Shown piece by piece: positions 21,776 to 57,175 of a stretch of 64,000 bases of DNA (within the stretch, counting starts at the first letter, position 1; every line of letters begins with the position of its first letter). The stretch covers positions 868,001 to 932,000 of the forward strand of contig JBBPEB010000021.1 in the NCBI GenBank assembly GCA_039096225.1. Direction: 5' to 3'. The notes beneath the pieces were generated by a model. It was not told the origin of the DNA. It saw nothing but the letters and a program-made list of their open reading frames with translations, and searched no databases. Made by a program: the position numbers and the translations under genes. The stretch is from Blastocystis sp. Blastoise (lineage: Eukaryota > Protista > Bigyra: Opalinata).

Positions 21776-21835
<60 letters not shown>

Positions 21836-24420: not shown

Positions 24421-24570
24421 ATCTTCTAAATATATAATTTATCTTCTAAATATATAATTTATCTTCTAAATATATAATTTATCTTCTAAATATATAATTT
24501 ATCTCTAAATATATAATTTATCTCTAAATATATAATTTATCTTCTAAATATATAATTTATCTTCTAAATA
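24421..24570. repeat. Tandem repeat of 19-20 bp unit ATCTTCTAAATATATAATTT, about 7.5 copies
   Basis: Directly visible. Confidence 0.9.
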
Positions 24571-25155: not shown

Positions 25156-25549
25156 AAACGAATAAACTGTAACTAATTCTCAACATATTCTTTTTTCTTT
25201 TCATATATTCAATCACACCTTATATCTATGAATGCATACACATATATTGCAGACCAAAAATCTACTCTTGAACATATTATTCAATAATTGTTTTTGTTAA
25301 TCGTCAATAATTTTTCGAAAATCAATCTTTACAGTATTCTACACATAAATTCATATTGATATATAAGATAATTCACATGTAATAATTTCAATTGTTTCAG
25401 AGAATAAGATTTTGTTCTTTATTTGTTATTATAATAGCATATATAATAGATATATCATCACAACAGTGCTTTCCAAAAACTATTACATATATTTGTGTAA
25501 TAATAATAACGTTTAAGCACAAAATATTCTAAAAAATGAAAATGAAAAA

Positions 25550-26000
25550 CAGCCCCTTCCCTTGTCACTGGACGGAATTGCCATATGGCAATTGTCACAA
25601 AATTTTCTGACAAAAAAGTGACAATTGCTTATAACTTTTTTGTTTTTCTTTTTAAAAATATAAAAAAAATATTTTCGAACTCAGCTCATCAAGACACGTC
25701 GATTTACACACTTTTCATGAAAAAAGGACCGGGTGACATAAAAAAGACAATTCATTCATTGACTATTATATTATGACATGACAGTTTTTGACAAAAAACA
25801 CATTATTCTAGTATATAATGTATGACCATTTGAAAATAAGTCAAATAAAACGTTTTTTGTGACACATGTTGTGACAGATACATGACTGAAAAGGTTATAA
25901 CTCATTAAATAACAGCAAGTATAAGTTTAATATGTGACTATTTGTGTTAAGTTGGGTGGCAAATAAAAATTATTTTGTGACAAAAGTCAATTGCTAAATA
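25550..26000. repeat. Left TIR and subterminal motif field (GTCACAA/TGTGAC motifs, palindrome AATTGCCATATGGCAATT)
   Basis: Perfect palindrome 25576-25593; TGGCAATTGTCACAAAA is also present at 56729-56745; many TGAC/GTCA motifs. Confidence 0.8.
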
Positions 26001-26471
26001 TATTTTGTTGTAGGTTATGTTAAAGAGTTTTATTTATGTTTATAATGAATAATATTGTCAATAAACTCTAAAATAATATTATAAAAAATAATAATGTAAT
26101 TAAAAAGTTTTTATTTTTGTTAAATATCATGAAAGAGTCTTGTAGGGACTCTGTAGATATACCCTGACTAGTAATAAAAAATAAATAAACAAAAAACATA
26201 TTAAAATATTTTTTTTTATAACCAAACAAAAAACAACAATATGAACAAAAGTTGGATTTTAAAAAACAATACTTCCAACAAAATTATTTTTAATAGTCTT
26301 ATAAAATGGTTTTAAAATGTATTTTATATGAAGAATAAGTCACACAACATATTTATAATATTTATATTATAAAATATATTGTTTTTATTTTAAAAAGAGA
26401 AAAATAAAAAAACGATTAGTAGTCACTTGTTTTATAATTATTGTATCATTAAATGCCAAAATAAATAAGGA

Positions 26472-26549
26472 AGTTGTTTGGTCGAATGGTTAGTGCGAAT
26501 AAAATTTTTACATGGTCGACGGATCGATGCTTACAAGGAACTATTTTTT
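26472..26549 (+). pseudogene. Degenerate tRNA-derived / Pol III unit
   Basis: A-box-like TGGTCGAATGGT, B-box-like GGATCGATGC, partial acceptor pairing, T6 run; no clean anticodon arm. Confidence 0.5.
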
Positions 26550-26837
26550 AAACTTTTTGTTTTGACTGCTATTTATTAATGATTTAATTTAAAAATCAGC
26601 TTTGTTTATATTTTTATTATTTGTAAACATGATTTAAATCATTGATGTCTGCTTTTTAGTTTAGAATCAACACATCAACGAAGAATCTCTTTACAAAAAT
26701 TAGTAAATTATATTTTAAAGCAATTCTAAGTATGTATAAGTTCTGTAAACGTAATAAAAGGCCGTAAATATTAAAATTGAGGATTTCAACTATGCTCAAG
26801 CTTATTATGTATAGTTTAGTGAAAAATAAAATTGAGA

Positions 26838-26915
26838 AAACATTTGGTGCAGTTGACCAGCGGTGCAAATATTAGGTGAGTTGTTGCTGGATCGAATCTC
26901 ACATCGGGCATTTTT
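26838..26915 (+). pseudogene. Degenerate tRNA-derived / Pol III unit
   Basis: A-box-like TGGTGCAGTTGA, B-box-like GGATCGAATC, T5 run; stems mostly lost. Confidence 0.45.
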
Positions 26916-27128
26916 ATTTTTACACTCATTTCTATTGATTTTAATATTTACGTTTTTTTAATTTTGTATTTGACTTTTTGGACATAAAAGTATGTTAGAC
27001 ATATGAACCAATATGTTTTCATTTCATTATTAAAATAAGGGACGATTTTAAAAATTTGAAGTTAATTGCCATTCATCGCTCATCCATTACCTTCAAAAAA
27101 ATGAAAGTATCACCAATCGATAGAGCGC

Positions 27129-28729
27129 ATGTTTGACACCCTAGCTGGACAAATGAGACCTATTAAAGAGGAATTAAGCAGTTCAAACGCCGTTTTAAAA
27201 CAAAAAACGGTCATTGAAATAAGATTGTTTTAATTTTTTTTTAAAGTTTTTTTACACTTTTATTTTTTCAGTAAAAATATAAATATTACCGTGAAATTTT
27301 AAAATTGTAAATTCATTCATATTATTATTTAATATATATTTCTCCATAATAAAGATGATAACAGCGTCTTTTATAATATTTTCATTACCAATATATGTTA
27401 GACAGTATATTGGTCAATCAAAAGATGAATATTATGAAGATATGAATGGTAAACATACAATAGATGATATAATTCCATCTGTTAAAGTATGTATAATTTA
27501 TATAAATATGAATAATTTATATAGAATGGACGAGCGATGAAATGTAAGGAGTACAAACGGTTTATTGATTCTTTGAAAGTGTCAAATTATAATATTATTT
27601 ATGTTATAGAAGGTATTCACATATTTATATATCATTATATTATATAGAAATTGAAAAACAACAACAAAGGTTTAATAATCTAAAAGTAAAATGCATCTCG
27701 ACATTATATTCTGGTATATATATATTGCTATTATTTATTTTATATAGATAACTCATCATTGATGAAGAGAATAGAAGTGATGAACAACAATATCACATTA
27801 TTATCAAAAGAAAATACTATTATTCAATGTAGTAATAATGGTTATATTAATGGTATATACAATATATATATCTATATGTATATCTATGTATATATAGTAT
27901 CAACTAAATCAGAGAACAGAATAATTGAAAAGTTCATGATAACTGATCCAATTGATTTAAGTGATGAAGATAATATTAAAGAAGTCCTTCCTATTTCAAA
28001 TTCAATTAAAGAAATCAAATCAAATCAAATTGATAATAGCAATGAAAAAATAATCTGTATTTATACAATAATCTGCTTATATATTTTTCTTATATTAATC
28101 ATAATAGATTACTCATTTTTCCTATATATAGTCTCTAACCAACCAAAAATTGATATTGCCAATTCTCCTTCAAAAAGAAAAGTAATTACTGATTTCTTCT
28201 GTATATACATATATTGTATTAATATATAATAAACTAATATAGCTGGTATCAGTAATCGTTCTGATTCGAATAAGCATGAAACTGACTTATCTGTTCTAGC
28301 AGCTCAGAAACTTGGTTCTTTGTCAAGGTTTATATCAGATGGCTTCTCATCATTACTAACGTCTCCAACTTCATTAATAGATGTTATAGACAAACTATAT
28401 GCAAATCTCCCAGAAAAGTATCAGTTAGAAGAGTCAATAGAGAACACATCACATATATCTAATACATCTCCTCATAATGATCAAATCGCAGTTCTTGACT
28501 CTTCTTCAAGTGTTTTTCCTTCTACACCTATTTATTTCTATCCTTTATCAACAATCCAAATAATAGTTGAAAAAAATATTCAATTATTTCAAATTATTAA
28601 TACTGTTATCAATAATAACGAAGAAACAGAAAAATGTATGATATCTATGCAAGAGAAATGGAGGAAATATGTTGAGATTCACTTGCCTGAACTTATCAAT
28701 CTTGTATCATATATTACTGATAGGAAAAA
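27129..28729 (+). CDS. Multi-exon coding region, probably the 5' half of the hAT transposase gene cut by the inner element
   Basis: GT-AG introns and open exons; the last exon (ORF 28320-28787) runs directly into the inner left terminal repeat; same strand as the transposase; start position approximate. Confidence 0.55.
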
Positions 28730-28805
28730 TGTTAGAAATACCCAGATTTCCCTATTGATTTGTATACATACCCAATTTTTTGTATGATTTGGTAGAAATA
28801 CCCAA
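28730..28805 (+). repeat. Inner left end: 3 x TG(T/G)TAGAAATACCCA-like motif, 30-bp period
   Basis: Copies at 28730, ~28760 (degenerate) and 28790. Confidence 0.8.
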
Positions 28806-30001
28806 AAGTATCTGTTAACATTTTGATTTCATTGTCCAATCGTATTAATTTATATAATAACCGTGTTTATTAGATGTATTTATAGAATTTAAATTAACAA
28901 AAAATTAAAAGAATAATTCATATTATGACGTTAGGATTTGACAATTTGATCCAATCAATCGATTTTTAAGTTTCTATTAGAAGTTCGTTTATTGTACTAT
29001 ATAATTCTAAGAATTTGCTTTTTGGCAATTTTATCTATTTTTCTTTATTTATATTTATGTCTTATTTTAACTAATATATATATTTATTTTGTTATATACC
29101 TTGTATTTATACTATTAATTCAATAAAATAACAATATAGACAAGGAATATAACATAATTGTCTGTAATTGTTTTAAAAAATAAGCTTGACAGACAAATAA
29201 GCCATAAACAGCTATGAAATAAACCTGATTAAAAAAGATAACATAGAATTACGTTATATAACATACTTTTAATTTACTGACAAATTAATTAATTCAATGA
29301 ATATTTTATATAAGACCTATATATTTATATTATATAAGTTTATAAATATTATAAAGATGTTTTTAGAAAATAGAACTTATTTTTTGATAATTAGCAGATT
29401 TCTTGATTCTTTGTTTTTTCATATATACTATTACAATGTCATAGTTACATTGTTTAAAGACAAATACATAAATATTAATCTCAAATAACTGTTTTAAGAG
29501 TATGAACTGTGAATTGATTAAGAAAAATATTTAATAGATGACGAGATTCAAGTTAAAACGTTTTGTTTAATATATGGTATTAGTTTCTCGATGTTATATC
29601 AAAAGGATAGATAGTTTTATAATGGATCAAGTAAATGTCGAAATGGAAAATGTTGTTTAAAAATCATGAATGTGTATGTATTGTGTTTGGTTGCTTATAT
29701 TGAGCATACTGACCAGAATTCAGTTTAAAATAATAAACTACAGTCGTTAAAGTATTAATGATTGCTGAATATACTCTGTATTTGAGTATATTTTGAAAAT
29801 AAAAAATGAATCTAAGTTTTAAAACTGTATTTAACTCAATTCTAACATATTTTGAATAAGATACACTGTTGAGAATAAAGCAGATTACAACTCATTTCAG
29901 AAACTGTGGGTTTTCAAAATATGAAGAGCTATAAAACGTCTGATATATATATTGATGAGCGTAAATATAGTTTGAAATTAAATCTTTATTAAATAAAATG
30001 T

Positions 30002-30080
<79 letters not shown>

Positions 30081-30085
30081 AATAA

Positions 30086-30151
30086 CTTATGTCAGGATTT
30101 GAACCTGATTGCTACCTAATTATGATAGCCTCTCACCTTATAGAGCATAAG
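30086..30151 (-). ncRNA. Non-canonical tRNA-like RNA, type A copy 1
   Basis: Minus strand CTTATG-CTCT ataaggtg AGAG-GCTATC ataatta GGTAGC-aa-TCAGG ttcaaat CCTGA-CATAAG. Confidence 0.8.
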
Positions 30152-30399
30152 AGTAATAATAATAATAATAATAAAATATGTAATATTTAATATATATATA
30201 TATATATATATATGGTATAAAAAATGTATACTTTTATTTTTCATATAAATTTATCAAATAGAATTTATATTATAGTTGCTTATATATATATATATTTATA
30301 AATAAATAATAGATCATTTTAAAATATATAAAATAGATATATAAATAAGAAGTATATAAATTAATGAAATAATAAGTATAAATAAAGAAATAATAAGGA

Positions 30400-32700
30400 A
30401 GAATCCTTTTACAATAAATAATAAAAAATAAATATAATATTTAAAAGTATATAGATAGAATTAATCAAATAGGAGAGAAGTATATATATATAGATATAAA
30501 AGATAATAAAAGATAAGAATTGAATATAAAAAATAATGAAGACAAGAATAAAAAGAAATAGGTTAACAAATGAGAAGAAGAAGGAGTTAGTTAAAAGGAT
30601 AGAGAGTAAAGAATAAATATAAGGAAGAAGAAGAAAAAGAGAAAGCACATATTGAAAATAAGATAAGAAGGTAAAAAGAAAAGAAAGAAATATGGATAAT
30701 AAAAAAGTATCTATAAGAGAAGAAGAAAAGAAGATAGACACTAGAGTTAGAAGAAGAACTAGGGAGAATAAATTAAGTAGAAAATAAAAATATGAAGAGA
30801 GTACACATAGAAAATATAAGTGAAGACGTAGAAGAAAAGATAGAATATGATGAAAGAAAAAGAGTATAAAAGTTTAAAAAAATATGTATACATATAAATG
30901 AGATTATGTGTAATAAATCTAGAAAATATTGAGATAAAAAGGAAGGAGATGAAAAGGAATAAAATGAGAATAATATAAAAAGAAGAGAAGGAGAAGATTT
31001 AAAATGAAGATGTGGAAGAAGAATGAGAAGAATGATATATAGAAGATATAAAAAGAGAAGAAGCAGAAGATATAGAAAAACGATAAATAAAATAAGAAGA
31101 GAAATATAGAGAGAATGAGATTGAGAAGGAAAGGAAGGAAATAAAGGATATAAAAGAGAAGGGACTAAGAAGAAGGATATTTAGAAGATCTATAAGAAGA
31201 AGAAGAAGAAGGAGAAGTAGAAGGAGAAGAAGAAGGAGAAGGAGAAGAAGAAGAAGAAGAAGAAAGATGAGGGAAATAAGGATATGCAGAAGAAAAAGGG
31301 GAAGGCCATATAGTAGATATAGAAAGAGGAGAAGGATAAATAGAAGGATATAGAGAGAAAAGGATAGAGAAGAAGAAGAAGAAGATAGAGAGAATAATAT
31401 ATAGAAGAAGAAGAATGAAGTGAAGTGAGGAGATTGAGAAGAAAAAGAAACAGAAAAAATAATGATATATAGAAGAAGAAAGAGATGAAAAATAAATAAG
31501 AGAAGAAGGAAAATCAAAAAAAAAGAATGAGAAGAAGATACAGAAGAATAAGGAGAATAAGATATATCGAGGAAGAAGGAGTATGAGGATGTATAGAAGA
31601 AGAAAGATGAATAGAAGATATAGAAGAAAAAGATGGAGACAAACGACAGAAGAAGAAGATACAATAGAATATACTAGAAAAAAATATATAAATAGAAGAT
31701 ATAGAAGAAGAAAGATAATAAGAAAAAAAGGAGATATGCAAAAAGAATGACAAATAGAAGATATAGAAGAAGAATAAGGAGATATAGATGATATAGAAAG
31801 AAAATGATATAGAGAAAATACAGAAAGAAAATATAAATAAACAGAAAAAATGTGAAAGAGAGAATATATAGAAGAAGACATAGAAGAAGGATATATAGAA
31901 TAAGAATATATAAAAGATATATAGAAGAAAAAGGAAATATAGAAAATATAGAAAGTCAATAAGGATATAATGAAGACGAAAGAGAAGGAGAATAATTATA
32001 TATAGAAGAAGAAGAGATACAGAAGGAGATAGTGAGGAATAAAAGAAATATACACGAAGATATAGAAGAAAAATGATAAGAAGAAGAAAAACGAGAAGAG
32101 AAAGAGTAAAGAAACAGAGAATAATTATATATAGAAGAAGAAGGAATGTAGAAAGAGTGTGTAGATAAAGAATTAAAAGAAATAGAGTATAGAAAAAGTA
32201 AAAGTGGAAGGAAATGAGAAAGGAAGTAATAGTAAAAGAATGAAATGAAGAAGAAAAAGAGAAGAAGAAAAGCAGAAGAAGAAACAAAAGAAGAAGAAGA
32301 ATAGGATAAAGTAATGGAAATGAAGAGAGTATGTAATTATAGGAGAAGAAGAACCAGTAATAATTAATGGAGGAAAGATGAAAGAGAAGGAAAAACTAGA
32401 ATATAATATAAAAGAGCATAAAATAAAACATACTATAAAGTAGTATTAGGAATAACTCTAACTGTCTATATAACATAAGAGTATAAGAATATAAAATGAA
32501 TAAAAACTAAAAGAGAATATAGAATTGAAGAGTGAAGGTGAGAAGAATGTCAATACAGGACAAGAGGAGAAAATAAAAATCAAAAAGCAACTATATACAT
32601 AGAAATAACGTTAGTAATATATCTATATAAACAATGATAATAAAAAGAAAATAATACATATAATAAGTCAATAATAAGAGGTGTTGTAGATAAACATAAT
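30400..32700. other. Purine-rich, C-depleted (plus strand) low-complexity tract, cassette copy 1
   Basis: GAA/AGA/ATA-dominated with internal repeats such as GAGAATAATTATATATAGAAGAAGAAG. Confidence 0.8.
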
Positions 32701-34323
32701 AAAAATAATATAAATATGAATAAAACATATGCTTAATAACTAATAAGTTTATATCATATAAGTATATATAAATATAAACATATATATATATATATTACAT
32801 GAAAAAAAAAGATAATGTTATTGTAATAAGACAAGAACTATATATAGAATTATAATAATAACATGTATAGATAATATATAGTATTAAAATAATTATTATG
32901 AAGAAAAATAATATAGAAAATATATATATCTACTGATTTGAAAATATATTTAGCTATGTGACTCAAAAAGACAAATCTAAATAGAGAATAAAGTATATTA
33001 ACTGAAGAAATATACTCTTTTAATGTTTGAGAACCAATCTGTTTAGCTAATTAGCCAATTATTTTTTTTAAATCTTTAAAACTCACTCATCTGACACAGC
33101 TAACAAATTCAGACTCACTGAGAAAGCCTAAAGAAACATTTTTATATGGTGACGTCACATCATCCCATTTATAACCATAAGACAATAGCTGATCATCTAA
33201 CTTAACCATTTTACATCACCTATATAAGCTTATAATAGAGAAAGAGAACATACCACCTTAGATCAATCTGCCAATGGAGACTGGAAGGTACTCTACTATA
33301 CTCCTAGGGCCTATATATAGATAGATATATGCTTAGAACATACAAAAACGAAATTAATCATATTTTATATATGATTATCGAAACTTCACTATAAATTAAC
33401 TTATTAAATTTTATTGAAATCTAAATATTTCTACTTTTTATTATTTATTATTTAATTTAAATACTTTAAACCGTTATTCTTACTCCTGATGTCTTCTTGT
33501 TGTTGATGGAGTATGTAATTATGTAAATAAAAATAGTTAATTGATTAATTATTTATAGAGTGTTACATAAAACAAAATTGATGATTCAAGTCATGAGAAA
33601 ATCACTAGACTTGATGAAGGCAAGAAGAATTAGTCAATTATATGATAGTCACTAGATTGCCTAAATGTGTAGAACTGTCAGAAAAGGTGAGTTTGTGTGT
33701 GTTTAAATTTAAATTCAACATTAGTTTGAATACGTATTTCACTAATTAATTCAATTTTAGAGAAGTTACAAACAGAATTAATTTTTCTCCGTGATATGTT
33801 GAGTTAGAATGCATTTATTCTGACATTCTGCTAATAATTTAAATTTAATTATGACCTATATAAGCCAAAGTTAATTATAATAGTTTTCTAGGTAATGTAG
33901 ATTTGTCAAGGTTCTTTAAAAGTCTCAAGAGTGGTTTATAAATGTTACAAATGACTTTTAGTGTCAATTATATTAATATAAACAGTTGAAATGTTTTTTA
34001 AGAGTATAGACAAAGAATGCATTGCGTGTTTATAGACTTCAAGGTGTTATTGATAAATATTTATTTTTTATTTGTGTGTAGAATTGATTAGAAGAATGAT
34101 TAACAAAATAAATTATTGAATAGAAAATTATAGGTGAATGTAATTATGAATGTGTTTGGTTTTAAGTAAAGGTATTTAAAAACAATATAGAAGAGCGACT
34201 AACGATGTATAGAGTTTATTCAATTACATGAAACTCAATGTATCAATTCATACTGGTTCTAATGAATGAGAATATCTATAGAGAAAAATATTTAAATTTT
34301 AATGAAAAAAATATAATATATGA

Positions 34324-34391
34324 CCCTAGATCAGGAATTGAACCTGATAACAATCTATTAATGATTGCTACTAACCATATTCAGTCTAAGG
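34324..34391 (-). ncRNA. Non-canonical tRNA-like RNA, type B copy 1
   Basis: Minus strand CCTTAGA-CTGA atatgg TTAG-t-AGCAATC attaata GATTGTT-a-TCAGG ttcaatt CCTGA-TCTAGGG. Confidence 0.85.
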
Positions 34392-34454
34392 AGTATTAAT
34401 TATATGAATATAACCATATATATATATATGTTTAACAGACAAAACCCCAAAATA

Positions 34455-34500
<46 letters not shown>

Positions 34501-34777
34501 AAGAGTTGTATCACCATTATTTGTAATAATTTATATAAGCTGATTATAGACTATATATATATATATAATGAATGAATAAGATGACATGAATTAATTAAGG
34601 GAATAACAAGTCTATATATATATGAATATATACATATATGTAATTATGAAAAATATATATATATATAAAGTAAAAAAAAATATATTTAAATATAACATAG
34701 GAACATATTATGTATATGTATTAAAACAATGAAAATACATACTCTTTACGTAGAATCTATTTAATATCTTCACACAC

Positions 34778-34809
<32 letters not shown>

Positions 34810-35499
34810 TAAAGTAGTGAGTATAAATGTATTTAATAGAAATGAAAGTTGGAAAACATAAAGTAAAGGATATATATATATATATATACAAGAAAATAAG
34901 GTTTAACATAATACAAAAGTAAATCATTCAAAACAATTATATATATATCCTTAATCCTATATATAATAAAATTGATATAAATATAATATTATAAACAAAA
35001 AGAGATATAGTAATATATAATAAAGTGTATATATAATTATTATCAAAATAAATACATAACTATATATAAAAGGAGCCAAATTGAATTTATATATATTATT
35101 ATAGTATATATACTACATAATTGAGCAAAAGAAATAAAAGAAAGAACTATTACCTTTTCTATATATATGTATAATTAGCTAAAAAAATATATTATAAAAA
35201 AGTAATATATAATATAGATATAGAAAAATAAAGTGATATAAAGAATTAAATGGAAGAATAATTATATAAAAGATTAAGTATACAAAATGTTTTCTTTTAT
35301 ATCATAAAAGAAAAATGTATTATAAATATAATCAGATGAAAAAACTATATATATAAAACATGAGATACATGAAAAGATGGCTTATACATTTCTATCATAC
35401 TATATATAATATATACTATCTACACCTATAGAATTATATATATAAGTCTTTAATTATATATGCATATATAATAAGTATATATAAAATATATATAATATA

Positions 35500-35647
35500 T
35501 ATATATAATAAGTATATATAAAAAAATATATAATATATTTATATATACCTTAAATAAATAATAGTAATGTAGTAGAAGAACTAAAGACCATCTATATATA
35601 GATTATTCTTCATTATTCTATTTTTTATACTTTGAATTTGATAAATA

Positions 35648-35678
<31 letters not shown>

Positions 35679-36222
35679 GTCTATATATACACTAGACATA
35701 AGACTGATTCTAGTATATGATATCAACTTCCAAAAAAGCACAAATCAATTATCTAAAGAATATATGTTAATTAAGGATATTTTCTTAAAAATATTATATA
35801 TAGTAAATATATATAAAATAATAATATAAAAAGAATATAAAAAAAAGTTGATAATATATATATATACATTTCTTTAACTAAAGCAACATTCGTATATTTA
35901 TAAAACACCTATATAACATATATATATATATAATTATAGTATTACTAATTATATTTTTATATAACTAATAAAACTATAGAGACATAAATAACATAAATAT
36001 AAACAATATGATATTATTAATAATTTTAGGTACATAATATAGAATATATATTAAATATAAAAAATATTATATGGAAAATAAAATAAGATATATAAATAAT
36101 TTGAAAGGGTATACAATAAAAATTAATTATTTATATATAAAAACTATATACGTTAGATATCAAAATTGATGTCTATGAACTTTATAATATAAGGGAAACG
36201 TCTCATTCTCTATATACAAATA

Positions 36223-36257
<35 letters not shown>

Positions 36258-44500: not shown

Positions 44501-45050
44501 TCTTATTTTCTTATCCTTCTCCTTCTTCTTCTCCTTCTTATCTTTCTCTTTCCTATTCTCCTTTTTATTCATATTTTGCTCCTCTCCTTCTATTCTCTTT
44601 TGAGTCTCTTCTTTTTCCACTTTTATTCTCATATTTCTTCTTCTATACCCACATATTATCCCTTCTCCGTCTTCTTTTTCTATATTATCATTATACTTCT
44701 ACTTCTAATCATTCTCATTCTACTTATTCTTACCTTCTATTGATGTTTTTCTTTTTCTTCTTCTTCTTCTTCTTCTTGTCCTTTATCTTGTCCTTCTCCT
44801 TCTCACTCGTCTTATTCTTGTCCTTGTCCTTGTCCTTGTCCTTGTCCTTGTTCTTCTATATCTCCTTGTCCTTCTACTTCTACTTTTTCTCTTTCTCATT
44901 TTACTTCTGCTGCCACTTTTTTATCAACTTCTATTATCATTCTTCATCTACGTATATTACTACCACTTCTTATTATAAATTTCCTATTCCTATTATTCTA
45001 AGAATCGTTTTCTTCATTCAATTGAAGTTGAATTCTCGTTTTTTAAAACT
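38600..45050. other. 6.4-kb pyrimidine-rich, G-depleted (plus strand) low-complexity tract
   Basis: TCT/TAT/ACT triplet mosaic with dispersed repeats (CTTCTAAGTCTAAGTCTATTTATAC at ~40491 and ~42453; ATTCACATTATCCTTT at ~39682 and ~43012). Confidence 0.85.
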
Positions 45051-45255
45051 CTATACACAATATTTGATATATTGAATTATATATATATTGATATATAAAA
45101 CAATAAATAGAATTGTGTATATATGTTACTTTTATTAGTATGAAGAATAACATATATAGAAAAACATATGTATTATATATATATGAATATATATATACTT
45201 AATCGGATATATTAGAATTCTATAATATATTATAAATAAGCATATGTATAGAATG

Positions 45256-45300
<45 letters not shown>

Positions 45301-46610
45301 TGTATATGTATGTAGAATAGATATACATATGTATTGAATAGTATACATGTATACATATATATATAAATTTATATATATTAAATATTGTGTAGAAAATAGA
45401 AATTCTAATATATTAATATATTTATGTAGAATCATGTAATATATATATATATATATATATTCTTGATTAAAAATATTAATAGTTCATATGATATGTCTAA
45501 TTTGTTTTCTTTTATTCTTTCTTTTAGCACTATATATTGTTTAGTATTATCTTTTAAATCATTTAATTTATTTTTAACACTTTTTTAATAACTTATAATC
45601 TATTTTTTGCTTTTTGTTTCATTTGATATATAATATATACAAACGATTGCATTTCTATAAATATGTTATTATAAGAGTATGATTTATTTATTTAAGTTTG
45701 TTTAGAAGAGTCATGACAACAATATCTTTTGACTATCCCATCCAGAAACATCATCACCTTGGAAATCGAACATAAACGGGTAATTTGAAATGTAACATCT
45801 GTAAACAAGTCTTCTTTTTGGGGGTTTTTTGTTTTTTTATTCGATACTCTAGCTTTTACATTTATAGTAAAAACTACATTCTCTAGTTGAAACTTTTTAC
45901 ATACATAATTTTGACTCCATATGTTTTTACAGTCTCAAATTTTGTTATTTATTCACTATCTTTAAACTTATGATAGTTCACCTTAATCAAACAAAAACAT
46001 ATTTCCACTTCTGGTTGTGTCTGAACTGAATCAGTTACCAAATTATAACATAAAAATAGTCTACATGAATCTAATATTGATTTACAGATATCTTTGTTGT
46101 TAAATATGCAGTAATTAAAGCTTCAATTGTCTAAATATGTCAAAATTAAAATAAAGTATATTCTTGTGATTCTGGACAACAAATTTCATTTTTATAGTGA
46201 TTAATTAATGAAAAATCATGAAAATTTACGTTGTAGTTTTTAAAAGCTTTATTCGAGAGCAATACAATATATTATTACACTATAAATGACACTAATCAGT
46301 CGATATAAGTGTCTGCAGTATTTATACTATCCTTAATCCAAAAATTTGAGATAATTATATTTAATTTGTAAATAAAAATGCTTATCTTAAATTAAATAAC
46401 TACTTTTCTAAATTATTATAATAATCTATTAAAATATTTCTTATGTTTTAATTACTACAAAATTTTTATGTAAGCTTTAATAAAGAAAATATAAATATAT
46501 TCTTGAGTATATTTTTTCTAATAATGACAAAAGAAATAAAAAGAATTTTAATTGGCTATGAAGAATTTGTGTTTTCAAACCACCAATCGTTTAGAGTCTA
46601 AAATAAACAG

Positions 46611-46745
46611 TTGGGTATTTCTACCAATTTTGTAAAAATTTTGGGTATTTTAACAAAACTTTTGAATATTTTTGGGTATTTCTAACAATTCGATTTTTTT
46701 TTGGGTAGGTTAAAATAATTATGGTTTTTTTGGGTATTTCTAACA
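46611..46745 (-). repeat. Inner right end: 5 x TTGGGTATTTCTA(A/C)C-like motif, ~30-bp period
   Basis: Copies at ~46611, 46641, 46672, 46701 (degenerate) and 46730; ends immediately before the transposase ATG. Confidence 0.85.
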
Positions 46746-49700
46746 ATGCCTCTTACTGATAATAATCTCTTCATGGATGTTGAAGTATATAAATGCCCTG
46801 TTCTTAAGAGTCTTCTAAAACATAATAATACATATAATAAGTTTATAATTTATAATATAAACAATCAACGATGGTATTGTATTTCGTGCTTATTGTTTTC
46901 AAAAGATCCCATTATTCTTGGTGAAATCTATTCAACAACTTCTGTTAATGCTCATAAAAACTCAAAGTCACACAAAGAATCCATGAAAATGTTTAAGTCA
47001 CTACTTAATAATCTTCAAAATAATCAGACGCTTCTTATTAATAGTACTCATTCCATTTCAACAAATAACAAAAAAGTCTGGAAGTACTTTTTCATGAAAA
47101 TGTTTAACTGTATGTCTCTTTGTCTATCTAGTATCCATTCAATATATGGAGAGACAACAAGACTTACTTCTCCTCATTGTGGTATCTTTTTGAAATTGCT
47201 ACTTTTGACTGGAAAGAATGATGAGTTATTCAACACTTTTCTAAAAGAGAATCAATACATTTATCAATCTGTGAGATCCACTCAGAAGTGGATAGAATTG
47301 ATATCAAATGATCTTATGCGTTCATTAAGAAATAGAATAGGAAATAGAATATATAGTATAACAACAGATGGTACTACTTGTCATAATATTGAGCAATTGG
47401 TTGTTACTATTAGGTTTTGTAATGATAATTTTGCTGTTAATCAATATTTTCTTAGTATGATGGAAGAAACATCTCCATCTGGAGTTAAAATAGCACAAAA
47501 TATAAAAGCATGCTTAGATATGAAAGAATTAGATATAAAAGATTTATGTTCTGTGTCATATGATAATTGTATTTGCAATACCAGTAATATTTCTGGAATT
47601 GTTTCAGGATTGAAACAACCTCCTGGAACAATTTTGGGATATGGATGTCGTGCTCATCTCCTTAACTTGGCACTTCTTGACCTTCAAAATAGTACTATTG
47701 ATTCTTTTTTATATATAACGTTGATAAATGATGTTGCCGTTTCTTGGGCAAAGTGTTCAAGGCTAAGAGTTATAATTAAAAACCATAATTTCAGTAAATA
47801 TACTCTTCCTCAAGTATCACAAACAAGGTTTATTGCAAGATACTACTCTATTATCCCCTATGTTGCCCATCCAAAACAAACGTTGTGCAAAATATTTTTG
47901 CTATACTTCTATTCCTACAATAAAAAAAATGTTTGTAATAATAATTCTGAAAAAATGCTTCAGTCGTTCGGTGAGTTATCTTTTCACATTTTCCTTGAGT
48001 GTTGGTTTCGAATACTATGCGTTGTTAATCATGCATCATCACAATTGCAATCAGAGACACTAACTGTAAATGAATCCATGAAAATTATCAAAAGATTATA
48101 TAATGATATTTCTAATTTATCTTCGTCTGATAATATAACTGAAATGTATGCAAATGCTATACAACGACGTGAGTATATCTATAGTTTTTTAGATGATTTA
48201 GTCAAATGTTTTGAACGAAACAAATATGATAATACAAGTGATTATTCCATAAATAGTATATTGCAAATCATGAAAAAGATTCCTGATTATTCAAGCAAAT
48301 GGAATAAACTGTCCATGGATGAATGGAAAAATAATATTGATGTTTTGGAAGCAATTGAATGTGAGGAAGATGAATGTATTATGAAGTCCAATGATAATGA
48401 TGATGAAATAATTGAATTATATGGTAAAAATTCAGAACTTCATTCAACATTCTCTTTTACTGAGTCAATTAGATCTATTCTTAATCATAGAGATGAGGCT
48501 GAGAAGAAAAACTTTGATGAAATGTGCTTACAAAAAGGATTGAACGTGAATTCACGAAAAAGGTATGTTGAAATATGCAATATTATTTTGTTTCTCTTAA
48601 AATATTGGGAATTCATTAATATATATATATAGAACTAGACAGAATGTCTTAATCAATAGAGACAATGACTCTAATATGGCTCCAGTTATTGAAAATAGGA
48701 ACCATTTCTCTCATCCAGGTAGAAATGACAAAATCGTGTCAAATATAAATTTATTTACAGCAGAACAATATATTGATTATGTAATGAACGCTGAAATTGA
48801 AAAGAGAAATGATGGTGCTCTGTCTAGCAAAAATTGTGAAAAAAGTTTGAATATTTTACCCAAAGGTTTTCAAATTCAGGATGATGATATTTGCATTTTA
48901 TATGATTCTCTATTTCCTTCTTCAAATTCAGAAACAACAAATGCTTCTGGTTGTGCTAATAGTCAGGTTACTGAAATTCAACCAAAAAATAATTCTTGTG
49001 GTGATACTTTATTATCAATTTCTCCATTCAAAAGGTGTCGTGGAAGGCCAAGAAAGAACAGGAATGATATACAGTGTGATTCAGATTGTTTCAAAGAAAC
49101 GAATACAATAATTTCTGGTTGTAAAAGAAGTACTACTTCTTATAGTGACTTTGGCAGTAGTAACTATTCAAACAAACACGAAAAACGTTTACAAAATGAA
49201 CAAAATAAGAATATTTCAAACGATGAGAAGAAAAAAATGATCATTACTACTATTTCTTCTCAGCAATATAATATTATGTTTAAGAATGAAAAGAATAATG
49301 TATATCGTTTTTCAGCTAATTTCAATTTGATGATTCTTCAACTCAAGCAGAATTTAGCAAGTCGTCTCTTTAAGAATATCATACAAGATTTATCTATTTG
49401 CTATTTCATTTCCACAGAATTTATTCTACAAACAGAAAGTAGTTTTCAAAATGTTTTTGTTGATACTTTTTATGGTTTATTTTCTTCTCGTTTTTCTGAT
49501 AATTATTGTATAGAAATGGAAAAGATTATGTCATACTTGAAAGAAACCGCGATTCTAACGTCTTCAATTGCTTCATTAGTAGATTTAGTAAGAAATCACT
49601 TCCCAAAGTCTTACATTCTTTACAAACAAACAGTTGAGCTGTGCCTTACAATAAACCCAACCAGCATAAAGAGTGAGTCGTCGTTTAGTATTCTTAAAAG

Positions 49701-49899
49701 GGTAAAATCTTATAGTCAAAACGGAATGAAAGGAAATCTCCTTGAAGCTTATATGTCTTGCACTTGTAATGAGTGCCTTCTGTCGTCTCTTAATGCCTCT
49801 AAAATTGTTGATGATTATATGGATGGACTACACCTACAACCTTTGAGTAATACATTAATTCAAAGAGTACTTAAAACTGAACTTCTTAAAACATTATAA
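46746..49899 (+). CDS. hAT-family DDE transposase (ZnF-TTF-like, DUF4371-like core, hAT dimerisation domain); one intron 48563-48632
   Basis: WYCISCLLF zinc-finger; YSITTDGTT (D), VSYDN (D), GCRAHLLNL (CxxH), SQTRF, PTSIKSESSFSILKRVK (E); the GTATGT...ATATAG intron joins the two ORFs in frame (~1027 aa). Confidence 0.9.
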
Positions 49900-50811
49900 A
49901 TGTGAACTACTATTAGTATGGTGCATGCTGTTCATTGTAATTTATTATATATATTATATATATTTAAGTTTGATTATTCCGTATTTTTCCTTTTATAAGA
50001 GTTATATTTATTTTTTGTAATCATTATCAAGTTCTTCTATTTATTTTGTTAGGTTTTGAGTTTTTAATTCTTAAGTTTTTATCAGAATCAGTATGTGTAC
50101 AACAAATAGCATTAAATATGGCTTTTATTTTATATCTAACATTTTTTGCTATATGAAAACGCTTTAAATAAATAATTCATATAAACATATCAACAAAACA
50201 GCAAGTTAAGATTATCGGGTTCTTTCATTTTTTATACTCTTTAACATAACAGATAAACTTGTATAACAATATGTGCTTTCAAATACTTTTAAAAAGTTTC
50301 AAAATAAAAACATCATCTGTATAGAAAAAAAGATCTAAATATTACGAGATTCAAAGTCACTTCAATGAATCCGTGTAAAACAGACCATGACTCATGATAT
50401 ATGAAGAGAAGGCTAGAAATTATTGTGGATCAAGTGAATGTGGTTGGTAGTATAGTGTATTAAATTATGACCGAGATTTATAAACTGTAAAGAATAATAT
50501 TTCAAATGTAAACCATAACCCATGGCTCTGTATATGGTGTGCAAATGGTGAAGCCAAAATGTTCATTCACTTAGCTGAGAATATAATCCATTTTGATAGA
50601 AATAATTGAGATCACGTATCATAAAGAAGTTTGAAGCAATATAAATAAACCTTAAATTACTATTATGTATGAAGTACAATGAATACCTATTGATTTCAGA
50701 AACTGAATAGTACAATAACACTAGAAAACTCTATAAAACATTATCTATATATGCATAACAATGAGTGTAGTTTAAATTAAGAAATCTATATATATAATAT
50801 ATATAGAATAG

Positions 50812-50875
50812 CTTATGTCAGGAGTCGAACCTGATGGCCTTTTTGAGTATAGCCTCTCACCATATAGAGCATAAG
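50812..50875 (-). ncRNA. Non-canonical tRNA-like RNA, type A copy 2
   Basis: Minus strand CTTATG-CTCT atatggtg AGAG-GCTAT actcaaa AAGGC-ca-TCAGG ttcgact CCTGA-CATAAG. Confidence 0.8.
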
Positions 50876-50999
50876 TGATAACCAAGAAAATAATCATATG
50901 CGATATGTAAATATTAAATTGACATAAAAAACATGACATCTTATATATGAAGAACCTAAATATATATTTTATTAAAAAATATATATATAACATATAGAC

Positions 51000-52429
51000 A
51001 GCATTTAAGTAAATAATAGTAGAAAGTATTAGAAAAAAAGAGAGAAAAAGAGACCACAAAAAGAAAAATATCATCTAAGAGTAATAGAAAATCTAATAAG
51101 AGTAGAAGTAATAAAACAATGAAGAGTAAATATAGTAATGAAGGTGAGATCTGTATGAGAATTGTTGTACAATTAAGATAAAGTATCGCTACTATTACAT
51201 TTGAATTATATTGAAATTAAGATTAAGAAGTGAAGAAAAAAAATTAATTGGAGAATACGATTAATAATAAAATGAAGGTAAATAAAAAAAGAATTAATAT
51301 TTTGAATTAAAAAAAATATATATAAGATAAAAGTACAAAGAATATATATAATTTGAATAAGAGTATGACAGGATTATTGAGTGAGTTAGAAAATGACTTT
51401 AATTAGAGAATAAATTAGTAGAAAAATAGGTGGAGGAGTCATTGAAGAAAAAGGTAGGAAAAAATACGAAAAGAATGTAGAATAATGTAGAATAAGAAAC
51501 AATTCCAATACAGAATAAAAATGCAATTAGAAATAATACTAAAAATAGAAGTAATAATGTGAACTGAATCAAGAATGTGTAACGATAGAAGTAATAGTAC
51601 AAGTGGATGATGATTGAAAGAAAGAAATGAGAGTTAGAATATGAATAAGAATAAAGGAAGGAATGAGATAAAAAGATATATATATATATATAAGAAGAAT
51701 AAAAGGTAGAATGGAGACATAAATTAGAAATAGAATTAGGAAAGATTAGTTGGAAATATAACAGGGAAGAAATGAAACTATTGTTAAAGGTAAAAGAATA
51801 AGAAGTAAATATAGTATTATGAGTAGAATTAATAATCAAAGAAGGAGTCAAGATATAAATAGTATATCAATTAATACTGAAGAAATAGAGAAACATGTAT
51901 ATGAGTAAGTATATGAATAGAATAGATTATAGAATTAAAAAAAGTGAAAATAATGGTATGAGCATGGCAAAAGAATGATCAGCAGCTGTAAAATAAACAA
52001 GAATATGATTACAAGTAGTAGATAAAACTTTATCAAAAAGAGAATAAGAAGAAATGAAAGAAATGATAAAAATAATTAAAAAATAAAAGCAGCCATAAAT
52101 GTAGTAGTAATAGCTAGAGCAAGAAATAATCTAAGACAAATACGTGTAACAACAAATATAATACTAAAAAGAGAGAAAGAATAGAAGTATAAAAAATAAT
52201 TATAGTATTAAGAGATTTTGGAAAAAATAAGAGAATATTCATTACAGTAGTTAATATATTGTAAATATGATATAAAAATAAATAAAGCATTAAAATCTAG
52301 ATTCATTTTAGAAGTAATACTAAACGTAGAAGTACAAAAAAGAGCCAGAATAAAATTAAATAATTAGGAATAATTTCTTGAATGAATGTAATAATTAATA
52401 TTAATAAGTCTGAATAAAAATATGAGAAT

Positions 52430-52487
<58 letters not shown>

Positions 52488-53300
52488 TAAGATTATTTAA
52501 ATGATAAAAAGTAGATAGAATTAAATACCAGAAATGTAGCAAATAAGGAATCAAGAATAAATATGTTTAAAAGAATAAAATGGAATTATAATTAAGAGTG
52601 TTAGAATATAAAAATAGAAAAGGAATAATTATATAATTAAGTTATACATAGTAAAAATAGAGAAGAAAGATAATTAGTTAGGAAATATAGGAAAAAGAAG
52701 ACATAGATATATACACATTGCATAAGAAACAAGTATATGATTGAAAATGAATATAAGAATGGTTGCAGGAATAGTAATAAACAAATCATTAGAATTAGTA
52801 AAGAAATGGCTTCAAGATAAGTACGGAGAGAAAGTAGAGATATATATAAAATAGTTAGTATGATATTGTATTAGAATTAGGATTAAAAATAGGATTGAAA
52901 AAGAAAAAGAAAATAAAGATGTATAAAAATTTATAATAGAAGTTTAGAAGCAATACTTGAGATTAGAGTAGGAATGTAAAAAAGGAAGCTAACTACAGAT
53001 GGATATAAATACAGAAATAACTTGACTAAATGTTTTATACATAACAGAATATATATATGAATTAGGATTTGGCGTATTAATGAATGTGACAATAAATAGA
53101 GAAGTTTCTTTTAGAAAAAGTAGAGTAAATAAAGTATAGAATAGATTAAAGACATAAAGCCAATACGTCTATATATATGATGATATATAAAAACGGCATA
53201 TAAATATTAAATGAGAAATCATATTTATCAATAAGAGATAGAAAGTAAAAATAAAATGAAAATAATATAATAATAAAATAAAAAGGAATTAATACACATT
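51000..53300. other. Purine-rich, C-depleted (plus strand) tract, cassette copy 2
   Basis: Same position relative to tRNA-like A as 30400-32700; NNA triplet periodicity with many TAA/TAG/TGA. Confidence 0.7.
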
Positions 53301-54868
53301 ATATACTAATTATAAACACTAAACACACTATGATTTAAAAAACATATATCAAAAAATATATATACAATAAAGAATTATTCAGTTATTATTTGAGATATGT
53401 TGGACTTTTATTAATAATGCATTACTATAAATAAAATATTATAGAGATAAAAATATTATATATAAATATAAATAAAACATACATCTACTGTTTAGAATCA
53501 ATTATATTATTCACTTTAAAGAACACTTTTTTGAGTTTCGTAATCAGTTTATTCTTTGATGATAAGAGATGAATTAATTGTTCTTTTTGAATTATAGAGG
53601 AAGAAAATTATGTACCTAGACTTTTCTATTGCCCTATCGCATGTTGCTAATTAATACTAATCATCAACAGTTCATAGCAGTCGAATAATAATACGTACCA
53701 CACTATATATCATAATGCCATATAATCTTGTATAATAAGAAATTCATACATGACATATATTCAAGAATAGTATGACTCACCAGATAACAAACTCTTGAAA
53801 AAACCTTTCTTTTCGTTTCATCATCACTTAATGTTGATGTTGCTTTTTCAAATAGATAATTTCAAACTATATAGATGTAAACATATACGTTCAATATTAA
53901 AATACAAAAAAAAACCAACAATATATATCGTTTATAATAATTAATCCATAAAAATTCTTTTGAACTTTGATAGATTTCTTTTTATCAGATAACATTCATA
54001 TTATTATATTGAATTAATTATGAAAGTAATTCTTGATTCTTTTGCTGTTTATGAGTGGTAGCATTACTATTTCTGCAAAATTAAATAAGTTTATTCATTC
54101 ATTTTTCCATAATGTGTAAGAAATAGAATCTTATGTCGTTTATAGATATTAGGGATTTGGGTTAAGTAAAAATTTACCATTATTACTGTATTTTATGAAA
54201 ACTTCTTAACCATACTAGTTGCCATAATTCATATAAATTCAATATTCTCTTGATAATGAACTTATGATCAGTATTTGAAAAGCATATTAAAGAAAAGGTC
54301 TATTATATTTGAATCAAAAAGAGTGTTTAGAATTATTTGTTAGTCCATATAAAAAATGATACAAAATTTTATGTGTAACTACTAGATTGTGCTTAAAATC
54401 TATATTACGTGTCGGAAATTTAAAATAAATGATGTGAAACAGTGATGTAAGTTCATGATGATCTATCAAAAGCTTAGTAAAGTAAATAAAAAAGCCCTAT
54501 ATCATTAAATGGTTCTGATTAATTTAAATGACCTCAACGAATTTAAAATGAAAAATATTTTGACTGCATTACCTGTTTGAAAACTTTAAAGAGTTGATAA
54601 ACAATGCCACTATTCGTTTTGAGTATAAAATTGATTAGAATGATTAACTAAAAAATGAAATAATGAATTATATATTCCAAGTGATTGCAATTGGAAATGT
54701 GTATTTTGATAATAAAGAGTAAACAGAAGGTTTGTAGAGAAAAAACAGTATTAGTCATTTTGTTTCAAAATATTTTAGATCCTATATATTTATTTAATAA
54801 AATAATTCATAAAGAAAACGTAATCAAAATAGAATATTATGAAAAATAATAAAAAATATCGTAAATAA

Positions 54869-54935
54869 CCTTAAATCAGGAATTGAACCTGATAACAGCA
54901 TAATATCGCTATTACTTACCATACTAAGTTTAAGG
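54869..54935 (-). ncRNA. Non-canonical tRNA-like RNA, type B copy 2
   Basis: Minus strand CCTTAAA-CTTA gtatgg TAAG-t-AATAGC gatattat GCTGTT-a-TCAGG ttcaatt CCTGA-TTTAAGG. Confidence 0.85.
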
Positions 54936-55635
54936 AATATTAAATACATGAATAGTATCAATTATTAATAATATAATATATAAAAATAGCAACTAATAAG
55001 AATAAAAAAAATGTACTTTACGATAGTATAAACCAATACTATTGCAAAAAAGCATATTAATAAAGAATAAAATACAACATACATAGCAATATAATTATAT
55101 ATAATAATACATGTATATGAAAGAAAAATAAAATTGAATACATATATATTTTATAACAGAATGCAGAATAGAATAATATAATATAGATATAAAAAATAGA
55201 AATAAGTAAGACATATTAAAACTAATTCACGAAAAAAGTTAATGACGATGATTAATAAATACAATAACTTATATACAATATAAATGAAATGTACAACTCT
55301 TAAGATAAATATATGTGAATAATAAATAACATGAATAATACGTATATATATGTTTAAGAATTATTATATTTAAAGCTATATATAACCTATATAATAGAGT
55401 AAAATAGAGATATTGATATTAAAGATATATATAAAGGATATGTAGCGAAAGGAGTATTATATGTATATTAAACAAAATTTGTACTAATGATACAAATAAG
55501 TCCCTAAGAATATACGCTAATAACACCAGCCAAAAATAATTCATATATATAAGGATATCAAGAAATATAATGTATTATTATGAATACTAAAATGGAAACA
55601 ATACATAGAATTATTCAAAATATTGAGAACTATGC

Positions 55636-55699
<64 letters not shown>

Positions 55700-56009
55700 C
55701 TATATATATATATATATATATATTAATGAATGTATCTTAATAGACATGTATATATATGATTCTATATATATATGAAATAATATATAAGAGAAAATATATA
55801 TTAAGGAAATGGAAATATATACAATACAATTGAATTAGAAAAAATATTAATCAACAGAATATATATATATATATATATATACAGTATTCTTGATATTGAG
55901 ATAATATTTGAATAGAATATTGAATTATGTATCATCTAAATATAATGATAATGAAAGATTCTATATAAAAATATTAAAAAAAATATGTATATATATAAAT
56001 GTGTACATA

Positions 56010-56699
56010 ATTATCAGAAACCATTACGCCGCGAATACGTCTTTTCTACTACAATCTCTTTGAGCATGATTCTATAATGAAATAATAATATAAAGATATC
56101 TATATATATATATTTCTACAATATATAAATTGCATTCTCAAATATATATAATAATACCACATAAAAATATAAAAATAAATATATACTTCCCACTTCAGAA
56201 AAAGTAATAAGACAAAAAGTAATATAGGACCAAATTCTTAAACATTCACCATTACTTTTTACAAAATCTACCTATATAATATATAAATATTAAAATAGTA
56301 TAAGATATACAATATGCACATAACATAGGCCAACAAACATACTTGACAAGGAAATGTTGATCATCATGGTAAAATCCAAATATTGATTATCCATCTATCC
56401 ATGATCTTCAAATGACCGTTCTAAGACTATATAGATAAATTAAGCTAATAATAAAATACTTTAAGACTGGATCGCCAATTACATTCAGGCCTTTCATTTT
56501 ATTTTACTTCATATCAACTATAGAATATATTTCATAGCAATATATACATACGAATAATGGATCAACTCTATTTAAATACTAATATTTACTATTTAAAAGT
56601 ATTATGAATATTTGCTATCCCCATAAAACTTTTGAATCTAAAAACTCTTCTCTATATAAGGTCATGAAACAATTACATATTTTCAGCCAAATTAAGCAT
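56010..56699 (-). pseudogene. Cargo gene X copy 2: multi-exon, in-frame stops
   Basis: Short GT-AG introns; exon patches similar to 37290-37490 (AATTGGCGATCCAGTCTT vs AATTGACGATTCATTCTT; ATGATGATCAACATTTCCT vs ATGATGGACATTTCCT). Confidence 0.45.
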
Positions 56700-57091
56700 G
56701 ACTGAAAAAAGTGTCACATTTTTTGCCGTGGCAATTGTCACAAAAGTCAGGGAAGGGGCTGATGAAAAAGAAAATTAAAATTATTGTCTACTTTAAAATA
56801 TGAAAATGATGTCAACATAAATCATATTTTTTTATTGTTTATATATGCAAGCTCATCATCTTTATTTTTATAAGTAAGATATAAATTCATAAATCAAGAC
56901 TCTATGTAAAATTAACATTTCTTAACTATTTTGTTTCATATTTGCAAAATTTTCGCTTTTATTTATTCATAGCTTTTCAATTCATTTTATATATACTATC
57001 TATATTATTAAAAACTTTAAATATCCTTAATATATAACATAATTGTAATTAAGAAATGACTCATTTATTGGAGTTGAAAAATATTCTACAA

Positions 57092-57175
57092 GCCAGTTTG
57101 TCCGAGTGGTCCAAGGAGGGGGACTTAAGATCCCTTATGCGAACGCATGCGTGGGTTCAAACCCCACAGCTGGCA
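57092..57175 (+). tRNA. trnL-TAA: tRNA-Leu(TAA)
   Basis: GCCAGTT/AGCTGGC acceptor stem, anticodon loop CT-TAA-GA, long variable arm, GTGGG TTCAAAC CCCAC T-arm, discriminator A, downstream T run. Confidence 0.97.

Follow-up and report, generated by a model that had tools for sequence, protein, structure and literature searches.

A hAT-type transposon of Blastocystis sp. Blastoise, probably split by a later nested insertion, and its family of unusually large relatives

Introduction

Why do two matching hAT-type ends lie 31.2 kb apart in the genome of Blastocystis sp. Blastoise, when hAT elements usually span only a few kilobases? The ends bound an element at positions 25550-56761 of a 64-kb stretch of contig JBBPEB010000021.1 (assembly GCA_039096225.1, positions 868,001 to 932,000), hereafter called the window, to which all coordinates refer unless a sister locus is named. 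A preliminary description had taken the whole for a giant, recently inserted hAT transposon hauling cargo. We conclude that a hAT element of 13.2 kb very probably inserted at this site and was later split by a nested transposon of 18.0 kb that has terminal inverted repeats (TIRs) of its own.

Blastocystis is the commonest eukaryote of the human gut, and its transposons are almost uncharacterized. The genomes of tortoise isolates have 21-23% GC, their intergenic regions are long, and low-complexity DNA makes up about 12% of them; the genome paper for ‘Blastoise’, one of these isolates, gives transposable elements as bulk percentages only, with hAT elements unmentioned (PMC10690189). A literature search found no paper on hAT elements in Blastocystis; the family presented here is undescribed. 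The window has a GC content of 0.17-0.29 per 2 kb and about 0.23 overall, in a host genome of about 22% GC. It was compared with nine other loci of the same genome, the sister loci, which were found by protein searches for genes of the family. Whole-protein analyses (fold and alignment) used the public record P0001 (WA158_006253).

Results

Ends and target site of the outer element

The 13-bp sequence CAGCCCCTTCCCT occurs exactly twice in the window, in inverted orientation at the two ends of the element, and the next-best matches carry three mismatches. Directly outside both ends lies the same 8-bp word ATGAAAAA, the target site duplication (TSD). From base composition we estimate about 5e-6 chance occurrences per 64 kb for a second inverted copy of such a C-rich 13-mer, and a p of about 1.5e-4 for the 8-bp match of the flanks. 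An unbiased scan for 10-bp inverted repeats with at least three G/C and an exact 8-bp TSD returned the outer pair as its sole match. Since 13% of shuffles also satisfy this loose criterion, the scan is not our main argument; we rely instead on the 13-mer and on homology. Shuffling with the criterion of 13-bp inverted repeats of any composition plus a TSD was uninformative, being dominated by (TA)n repeats. GTGACA/TGTCAC hexamers gather near the ends: 9 of the 19 in the window lie in the first 430 bp or the last 50 bp of the element, seven of them in the first 430 bp of the left arm. The perfect TIRs starting with CAG, the exact TSD and the shared subterminal motifs of the preliminary description are therefore real. 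The insertion site is intergenic, with the right end 330 bp from a tRNA-Leu gene.

Could the two ends instead stem from different hAT copies or solo ends that match in 8 bp by chance, with ordinary DNA between them? ATGAAAAA is a low-information word in a genome of 22% GC, and the shuffle result given above shows how easily loose criteria are satisfied. However, the two ends have a private TIR variant in common, CAGCCCC..., and once the nested element is taken out, the order of the interior (left arm, N-terminal exons, rest of the gene, right-end region) is that of the sister copies. The joint chance probability by composition is about 1e-9, and we regard this explanation as extremely unlikely.

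An 18-kb element nested in the transposase gene

The transposase gene of the element falls into N-terminal exons and a remainder, with 18,030 bp of non-coding DNA between them (Table 1). Sister locus L002, which shares the left 2.3 kb of the window copy at 83% identity, is uninterrupted at this point: the homologue of 28304-28712 directly precedes the homologue of 46758 onward. Alignment to L002 and L003 places the breakpoints between TCATATATTACTGATA and GGAAAAATGTTAG and between CTAACAATGCCTC and TTACTGATAATAATCTC. These breakpoints, together with the 9-bp duplication TTACTGATA on both sides, identify the intervening DNA as an insertion. Removing one copy of the duplication restores the reading frame found in the sisters, which runs across the junction from ...LVSYITD to NNLFMDVE..., as for example in P0002 (ISYVIDDLLFLDVE). 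The two ends of the insert have TGTTAGAAATACCCA in common (15-bp core), and the subterminal repeat TAGAAATACCCA has two copies near the left end and three inverted copies near the right end; it is absent elsewhere in the window and in every fetched locus. Of the 31 kb between the outer ends, 18 kb belong to an unrelated TIR element with its own 9-bp TSD and are no cargo taken up by the hAT.

No Pfam-positive open reading frame (ORF) and no transposase were found in the nested element. Strand-skewed low-complexity sequence makes up 8.65 kb of it, nearly half. The ORF at 42835-45075 (746 amino acids) encodes a string rich in F, L and S, as expected for a nearly purine-free strand; the long ORFs at 39.6-45.1 kb were rejected as genes, being composition artefacts. 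Two public gene models in the pyrimidine tract (41516-42081 and 44065-45075, both +) have no Pfam match and are likely annotation artefacts. Within the polypyrimidine block, 40468-41314 and 42430-43242 form a direct repeat of about 0.85 kb with 74% identity, which suggests growth of the tract through local duplication. A TSD of 9 bp makes Mutator a candidate class for the nested element, although the TSD may be readable as 8 bp instead.

It is very unlikely that a mis-assembly placed unrelated low-complexity sequence in the element and that the 18-kb insert is not real. Extreme low complexity over 8.65 kb is hard to assemble, but the two termini of the insert match and are accompanied by subterminal repeats, and an exact 9-bp duplication that restores the frame of the sisters is not expected of an assembly chimera. 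In addition, the locus lies on a long-read contig of 1.06 Mb (PMC10690189).

Outside the transposase, ORF and Pfam searches over 25550-56761 found no credible ORF or Pfam match, and the right arm (49900-56761), which also holds no credible ORF, is unconserved beyond its last ~90 bp. Most of the extra DNA consists of nested repeats and of low-complexity tracts that have expanded, and it includes no host genes. Without the nested insert the element measures 13.2 kb, in agreement with the ~13 kb originally estimated.

Sister copies and mobility of the family

At each of the nine sister loci the left end aligns with that of the window copy at the TIR, and the DNA to the left of the TIR is unrelated. 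The family consensus of the TIR at both ends is CAG..(C/A)CTTCC. The window copy has the variant CAGCCCC at both ends, which is shared by the left TIR of L008; most sisters have CAGTGCC or CAGCGAC. Three sister loci, L008, L009 and L010, hold complete elements, and L010 holds in addition a miniature inverted-repeat transposable element (MITE) built of the two ends of the family. All four have right ends to which the last ~90 bp of the window element can be aligned. For the loci L001/L007, L002, L003, L005 and L006, right ends were not found within the fetched 8-10 kb. Altogether the sampled loci number ten, with five complete elements including that of the window and the MITE. A search for further copies with other TSDs, proposed in the preliminary description, was thus successful: the four sisters are flanked by perfect 8-bp TSDs, each different from ATGAAAAA (Table 1). 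A central TA is present in one of the five TSDs of the family; Buster-type hATs prefer targets with a central TA.

The elements of L009 and L010 are 91-99% identical over about 19 kb, and their flanks are unrelated. More than 9 kb are identical at 98.5-98.9%, extending far past the transposase gene. Near-identity of this extent at unrelated sites shows that the family moves very large units of about 19 kb. After the left arm and ahead of the transposase gene, both elements contain an N-terminal fragment of UTP20, a nucleolar gene of the host; it matches positions 3-120 of the profile PF07539 (E 2e-23) and lies at 7376-8893 in L009 and in the corresponding part of L010. The family therefore demonstrably captures and hauls host DNA, and with 13-24 kb its elements are unusually large. 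The picture of a giant, cargo-hauling hAT holds for the family in these respects and fails for the window copy, which has no host gene. In L009 a 4.5-kb stretch (17461-21969) is missing from the near-identical L010 sister; its junctions have an imperfect direct repeat of ~12 bp, and it may be another nested insertion.

The transposase gene and its relation to hAT transposases

The public gene model WA158_006253 (P0001, 1027 amino acids) is a truncated model of a gene that truly begins at 27355. Its ATG at 46746 still lies inside the nested element, which ends at 46752. The exon 46746-48562 is 100% identical to the model; with the downstream intron at 48563-48632 (70 nt) the exon lengths reproduce the 1,027 residues of P0001. 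What P0001 lacks is the N-terminal extension of ~370 residues; it retains the catalytic residues, the C-terminal region and the putative zinc finger. Full-length sister transposases have 1,271-1,421 amino acids, and the closest of them, P0155 (59% identical to P0001), could be placed by tblastn on both sides of the insert (Table 1). Stop-containing, AT-rich stretches in the N-terminal part coincide with intron positions of the L008 sister gene. The N-terminal extension, of about 310-400 residues, is specific to the family and contains no Pfam domain.

Among the annotated proteins of the genome, the best match to P0001 is 69% identical but covers a partial copy, and the best full-length one is 59% identical. 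No annotated protein of the genome exceeds 69%, and hence the window copy has no recent sibling among them. The claim of a recent insertion rests solely on 42 unmutated TIR and TSD bases, which are a weak clock.

A phmmer search with P0001 yielded 635 relatives. Among 60 of these that were sampled, 55 contain DUF4371 and 41 Dimer_Tnp_hAT, the latter at E <0.001. In the alignment of the 60 sequences C45, C48, H70, H76, D208, D273, C301 and H304 are near-invariant. The first four would form a putative N-terminal zinc finger of the BED type, but P0001 has no Pfam zinc-finger match; the third acidic residue was read by eye in ...KSESSFS..., aligned to the consensus ERSFS. The AlphaFold model of P0001 has a mean predicted local distance difference test (pLDDT) of 74 and a predicted template modelling score (pTM) of 0.69, and its ten best matches in the PDB are all Hermes transposase (E 4.7e-7 to 5.9e-5, probability 1.0). 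With 8-bp TSDs in the window and four family members, short TIRs starting with CAG, the relatives, the conserved residues and the predicted Hermes-type DDE RNase H-like fold, we accept the element as a member of the hAT superfamily. The internal hAT transposase of the preliminary description is upheld on the same grounds.

A gene of this kind might also be a domesticated, hAT-derived host gene. The copies are single, deeply diverged (46-69% at the amino acid level) and keep long open frames, and the left arm beside them is oddly conserved. Every complete copy, however, is bounded by TIRs and 8-bp TSDs, one derivative is a MITE, and two copies at different loci are nearly identical, so that we hold domestication to be highly improbable.

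Order of events at the locus

On our preferred reading, a single hAT insertion into an intergenic site would have duplicated the 8-bp target. The element proper comprises a conserved left arm of 1.8 kb, a multi-intron gene of about 4.5 kb for a transposase of ~1,400 amino acids, and a right arm of 6.9 kb. The unrelated, non-coding 18.0-kb TIR transposon would then have entered a transposase exon between ...SYITD and NNLFMDVE..., duplicating TTACTGATA. Judging from the family, and with Hermes and Ac as models, the transposase would bind the GTGACA-type subterminal motifs via its zinc-finger region, and its DDE RNase H-like site would cut at the CAG termini, with re-insertion at an 8-bp stagger. 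The downstream frame of 1,027 amino acids, which gained its start codon from the end of the nested element, keeps the D, D and E residues and CxxH along with the putative zinc finger and the putative hAT region at the C-terminus, and might still yield a shortened enzyme. Alternatively, the window copy would depend on sister copies.

The nested insertion might instead have happened at an earlier location, the 31-kb composite having moved to the present site as one unit with the help of the shortened or a trans-acting transposase. The perfection of both outer ends and of the TSD would fit such a move, as would the ability of the family to move ~19-kb units and the catalytic hallmarks that are all kept in the downstream ORF. 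Moreover, L008, with the same left TIR variant, has an intact gene for 1,394 amino acids and could act in trans. On the other side, neither the composite nor the nested element was found a second time in any fetched locus, no annotated protein is closer to P0001 than the relatives given above, and a split transposase gene is what a later hit usually leaves behind. We consider a move as one unit unlikely, if conceivable, and prefer insertion of the 13.2-kb element followed by the nested insertion.

Several points weigh against this preference. Three points are inferred: which insertion came first, whether the window copy is active and what motif the transposase binds. The intactness of the N-terminal exons would depend on the predicted introns. 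The outermost seven bases of the nested element mismatch each other. The family was sampled over ~190 kb of the 33-Mb genome, reached via protein look-ups. As to the hAT domains, P0001 falls below the curated cut-offs of Pfam: DUF4371 (PF14291), although listed as a precomputed match for P0001, scores 19 bits in the window exons against a cut-off of 32.1 bits, and Dimer_Tnp_hAT (PF05699) scores 16-18 bits in the window protein (E 0.002-0.011) against 21.4 bits. Searches of PDB sequences with P0001 and with a six-sequence profile were blank, and the fold model is of medium confidence, with target TM-scores of 0.35-0.45 for the Hermes matches. Because of the blank PDB searches and the sub-threshold Pfam scores, membership in hAT rests on transitive homology, conserved residues and the fold model.

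Left arm, tRNA-like pieces and a dispersed repeat

The left arm is better conserved than the gene. Between 25550 and 26920 it is 83-93% identical to L002, L006, L008, L009 and L010, against 66-73% for the transposase coding DNA; constraint or gene conversion could account for this. Two stretches of the left arm look derived from tRNA genes, each followed by a T run (~26470-26550 and ~26824-26910). For the first of them, cloverleaf and covariation analysis gave no support.

Four further tRNA-like pieces lie in the window, two in the nested element and two in the right arm of the hAT element, and seven at sister loci (Table 1). The right-arm pieces are paralogous to the nested pair, with a spacing of 4,058 nt versus 4,239 nt. 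A cloverleaf consensus can be drawn from the eleven copies together, and 14 of its 24 pairs stay paired through changes on both sides. The pieces are AT-rich, and same-strand pairs stand 4.06-4.45 kb apart. A single piece is recognized by ARAGORN, as Ile-AAT. They were rejected as canonical tRNA genes, having no Rfam score even at E=1; they may act as functional RNAs or be remnants of various tRNA genes. Between them, no Rfam match to a mitochondrial-type rRNA was found. A segmental duplication of 30.0-34.4 kb and 50.8-55.0 kb was rejected as well, as only the four tRNA-like pieces align in the self-comparison.

Two tRNA-like pieces and a polypurine tract are also carried by a non-coding dispersed repeat of about 6.5 kb, present at L008 2785-9463 and L007 14452-20811 (80-88% identical to each other). 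It is inserted in or beside several hAT copies: in L008 it lies within the left arm of the element, while in L002 the left TIR of the hAT element sits immediately next to the end of the repeat. Probably, the two tRNA-like modules of the window are old, decayed members of this repeat.

Neighboring genes

The tRNA gene beyond the right end (57092-57175, +) is a canonical tRNA-Leu(UAA) with an Rfam score of 53.8 bits, and a dCMP deaminase gene follows at 57278-58529 (-). A search with an exon of the latter for the corresponding region in sister isolates matched its own record only. Further to the left, the window contains an ORF with a DIX domain at 1050-1700 (-; E 2.8e-12) and one with a hormone-receptor (HRM) domain at 17913-21689 (-; E 3.9e-6). 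Both domain families are best known from animals and occur here in a stramenopile.

Table 1 Features of the outer hAT element, the nested element, sister elements and associated repeats
Locus	Feature	Position	Strand	Remarks
Window	Left TSD copy ATGAAAAA	25542-25549		8 bp, identical to 56762-56769
Window	Left TIR CAGCCCCTTCCCT	25550-25562	+	13 bp; aligns with left TIRs of nine sister loci (CAG..C/ACTTCC)
Window	Left arm, non-coding	25550-27354	+	1.8 kb; conserved part 25550-26920 (~1.3 kb)
Window	Transposase N-terminal exons	27355-28722	+	start MITASFII...; short AT-rich introns
Window	Match to P0155 residues 1-44	27355-27486		tblastn
Window	Match to P0155 residues 45-369	27525-28721		tblastn
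Window	Nested element, left TSD TTACTGATA	28714-28722		9 bp
Window	Nested TIR element	28723-46752		18,030 bp, non-coding
Window	tRNA-like piece a1	30084-30154	-	nested element; ARAGORN tRNA-Ile AAT; no Rfam score
Window	Polypurine block	30400-32549	+	nested element; 81% purine
Window	tRNA-like piece b1	34320-34397	-	nested element
Window	Polypyrimidine block	38550-45049	+	nested element; 80% pyrimidine
Window	Nested element, right TSD TTACTGATA	46753-46761		9 bp
Window	Transposase gene, remainder	46762-49899	+	putative zinc finger, RNase H-like catalytic core, putative hAT C-terminal region
Window	Match to P0155 residues ~370-969	46762-48563		tblastn
Window	Match to P0155 residues 969-1394	48631-49896		tblastn
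Window	Right arm, non-coding	49900-56748	+	6.9 kb; family conservation only in last ~90 bp
Window	tRNA-like piece a2	50806-50884	-	hAT right arm
Window	tRNA-like piece b2	54864-54942	-	hAT right arm
Window	Right TIR (reverse complement of CAGCCCCTTCCCT)	56749-56761	-	13/13 match to left TIR
Window	Right TSD copy ATGAAAAA	56762-56769		directly outside right TIR
L008	Complete element	1522-17840		16,319 bp; perfect TSD GTTGTCTA
L009	Complete element	1009-24645		23,637 bp; perfect TSD ATTTAAAA
L010	Complete element	1433-20410		18,978 bp; perfect TSD TAAAAATT
L010	MITE	24411-24603		193 bp; built of the family's two ends; perfect TSD GACATGAT
L003	tRNA-like piece	~5391-5469
L005	tRNA-like piece	~15759-15837
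L008	tRNA-like pieces	~4722-4800, ~9170-9248
L007	tRNA-like pieces	~16385-16463, ~20529-20607, ~20875-20953
L002	Fragments of ~6.5-kb repeat	167-1521, 4635-4774
L003	Fragment of ~6.5-kb repeat	8873-10170
L010	Fragments of ~6.5-kb repeat	360-1379, 20963-21975, 22324-23682

Discussion

The family described here means that cut-and-paste hATs in a protist move ~19 kb together with captured host sequence. This bears on the payload limit of hAT transposition and on how the genomes of the tortoise lineage grew large and rich in low-complexity DNA. It bears on annotation as well, with three public gene models that are likely wrong: the truncated transposase and the two ORFs in the pyrimidine tract. 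We tentatively suggest, as a possibility below even chances, that tortoise Blastocystis harbors a lineage of constitutively giant hATs with a backbone of ~9-10 kb and elements of up to 24 kb, which encode transposases of ~1,400 amino acids, move units of at least 19 kb, capture host fragments and keep the 1.3-kb left arm under a constraint that exceeds the one on the transposase. Functional RNAs might be encoded by this arm and by the tRNA-like cloverleaf elements that repeatedly accompany the transposons.

Among known systems, the nested element is comparable to Mutator-like elements in its 9-bp TSD and its termini starting with G. Mutator elements have TSDs of 9-11 bp, long TIRs and a MURA-type transposase, and the nested element differs from them in the lack of a long TIR and of a transposase and in its 18 kb of non-coding DNA. 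The outer element resembles the hAT superfamily (Ac, hobo, Hermes and Tol2, and the DUF4371/ZBED5/FAM200-like branch) in its 8-bp TSD, CAG TIRs and subterminal motifs and, at the protein level, in a DDE RNase H-like core that includes CxxH and in the modelled Hermes fold; a CxxC...H...H zinc finger near the N-terminus and a hAT region at the C-terminus are putative further similarities. TIRs of hAT elements measure about 10-25 bp and start with (C/T)AG. In contrast to typical hATs, the Blastocystis family has elements of 13-24 kb, transposases of ~1,300-1,420 amino acids with an N-terminal extension, capture of a gene fragment by an autonomous hAT and a non-coding left arm of 1.3 kb that is more conserved than the gene.

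Pack-MULE-type elements also capture gene fragments, their carrier being a non-autonomous Mutator element. The UTP20 fragment of L009 and L010, which has been copied to a second locus, is similar in this respect, although its carrier is an autonomous hAT and the window copy is without a capture. The closest known large case is ToxhAT from wheat-pathogenic fungi, a hAT-like transposon of 14.3 kb with 74-bp TIRs and several genes including ToxA (PMC6737239). Like the Blastocystis elements, ToxhAT is a hAT-associated TIR element of more than 10 kb that carries passenger DNA, both coding and non-coding, and lies among other transposons. The window copy differs from it by its 13-bp TIRs and by having no passenger gene, and within the Blastocystis family a captured fragment is found only in L009 and L010.

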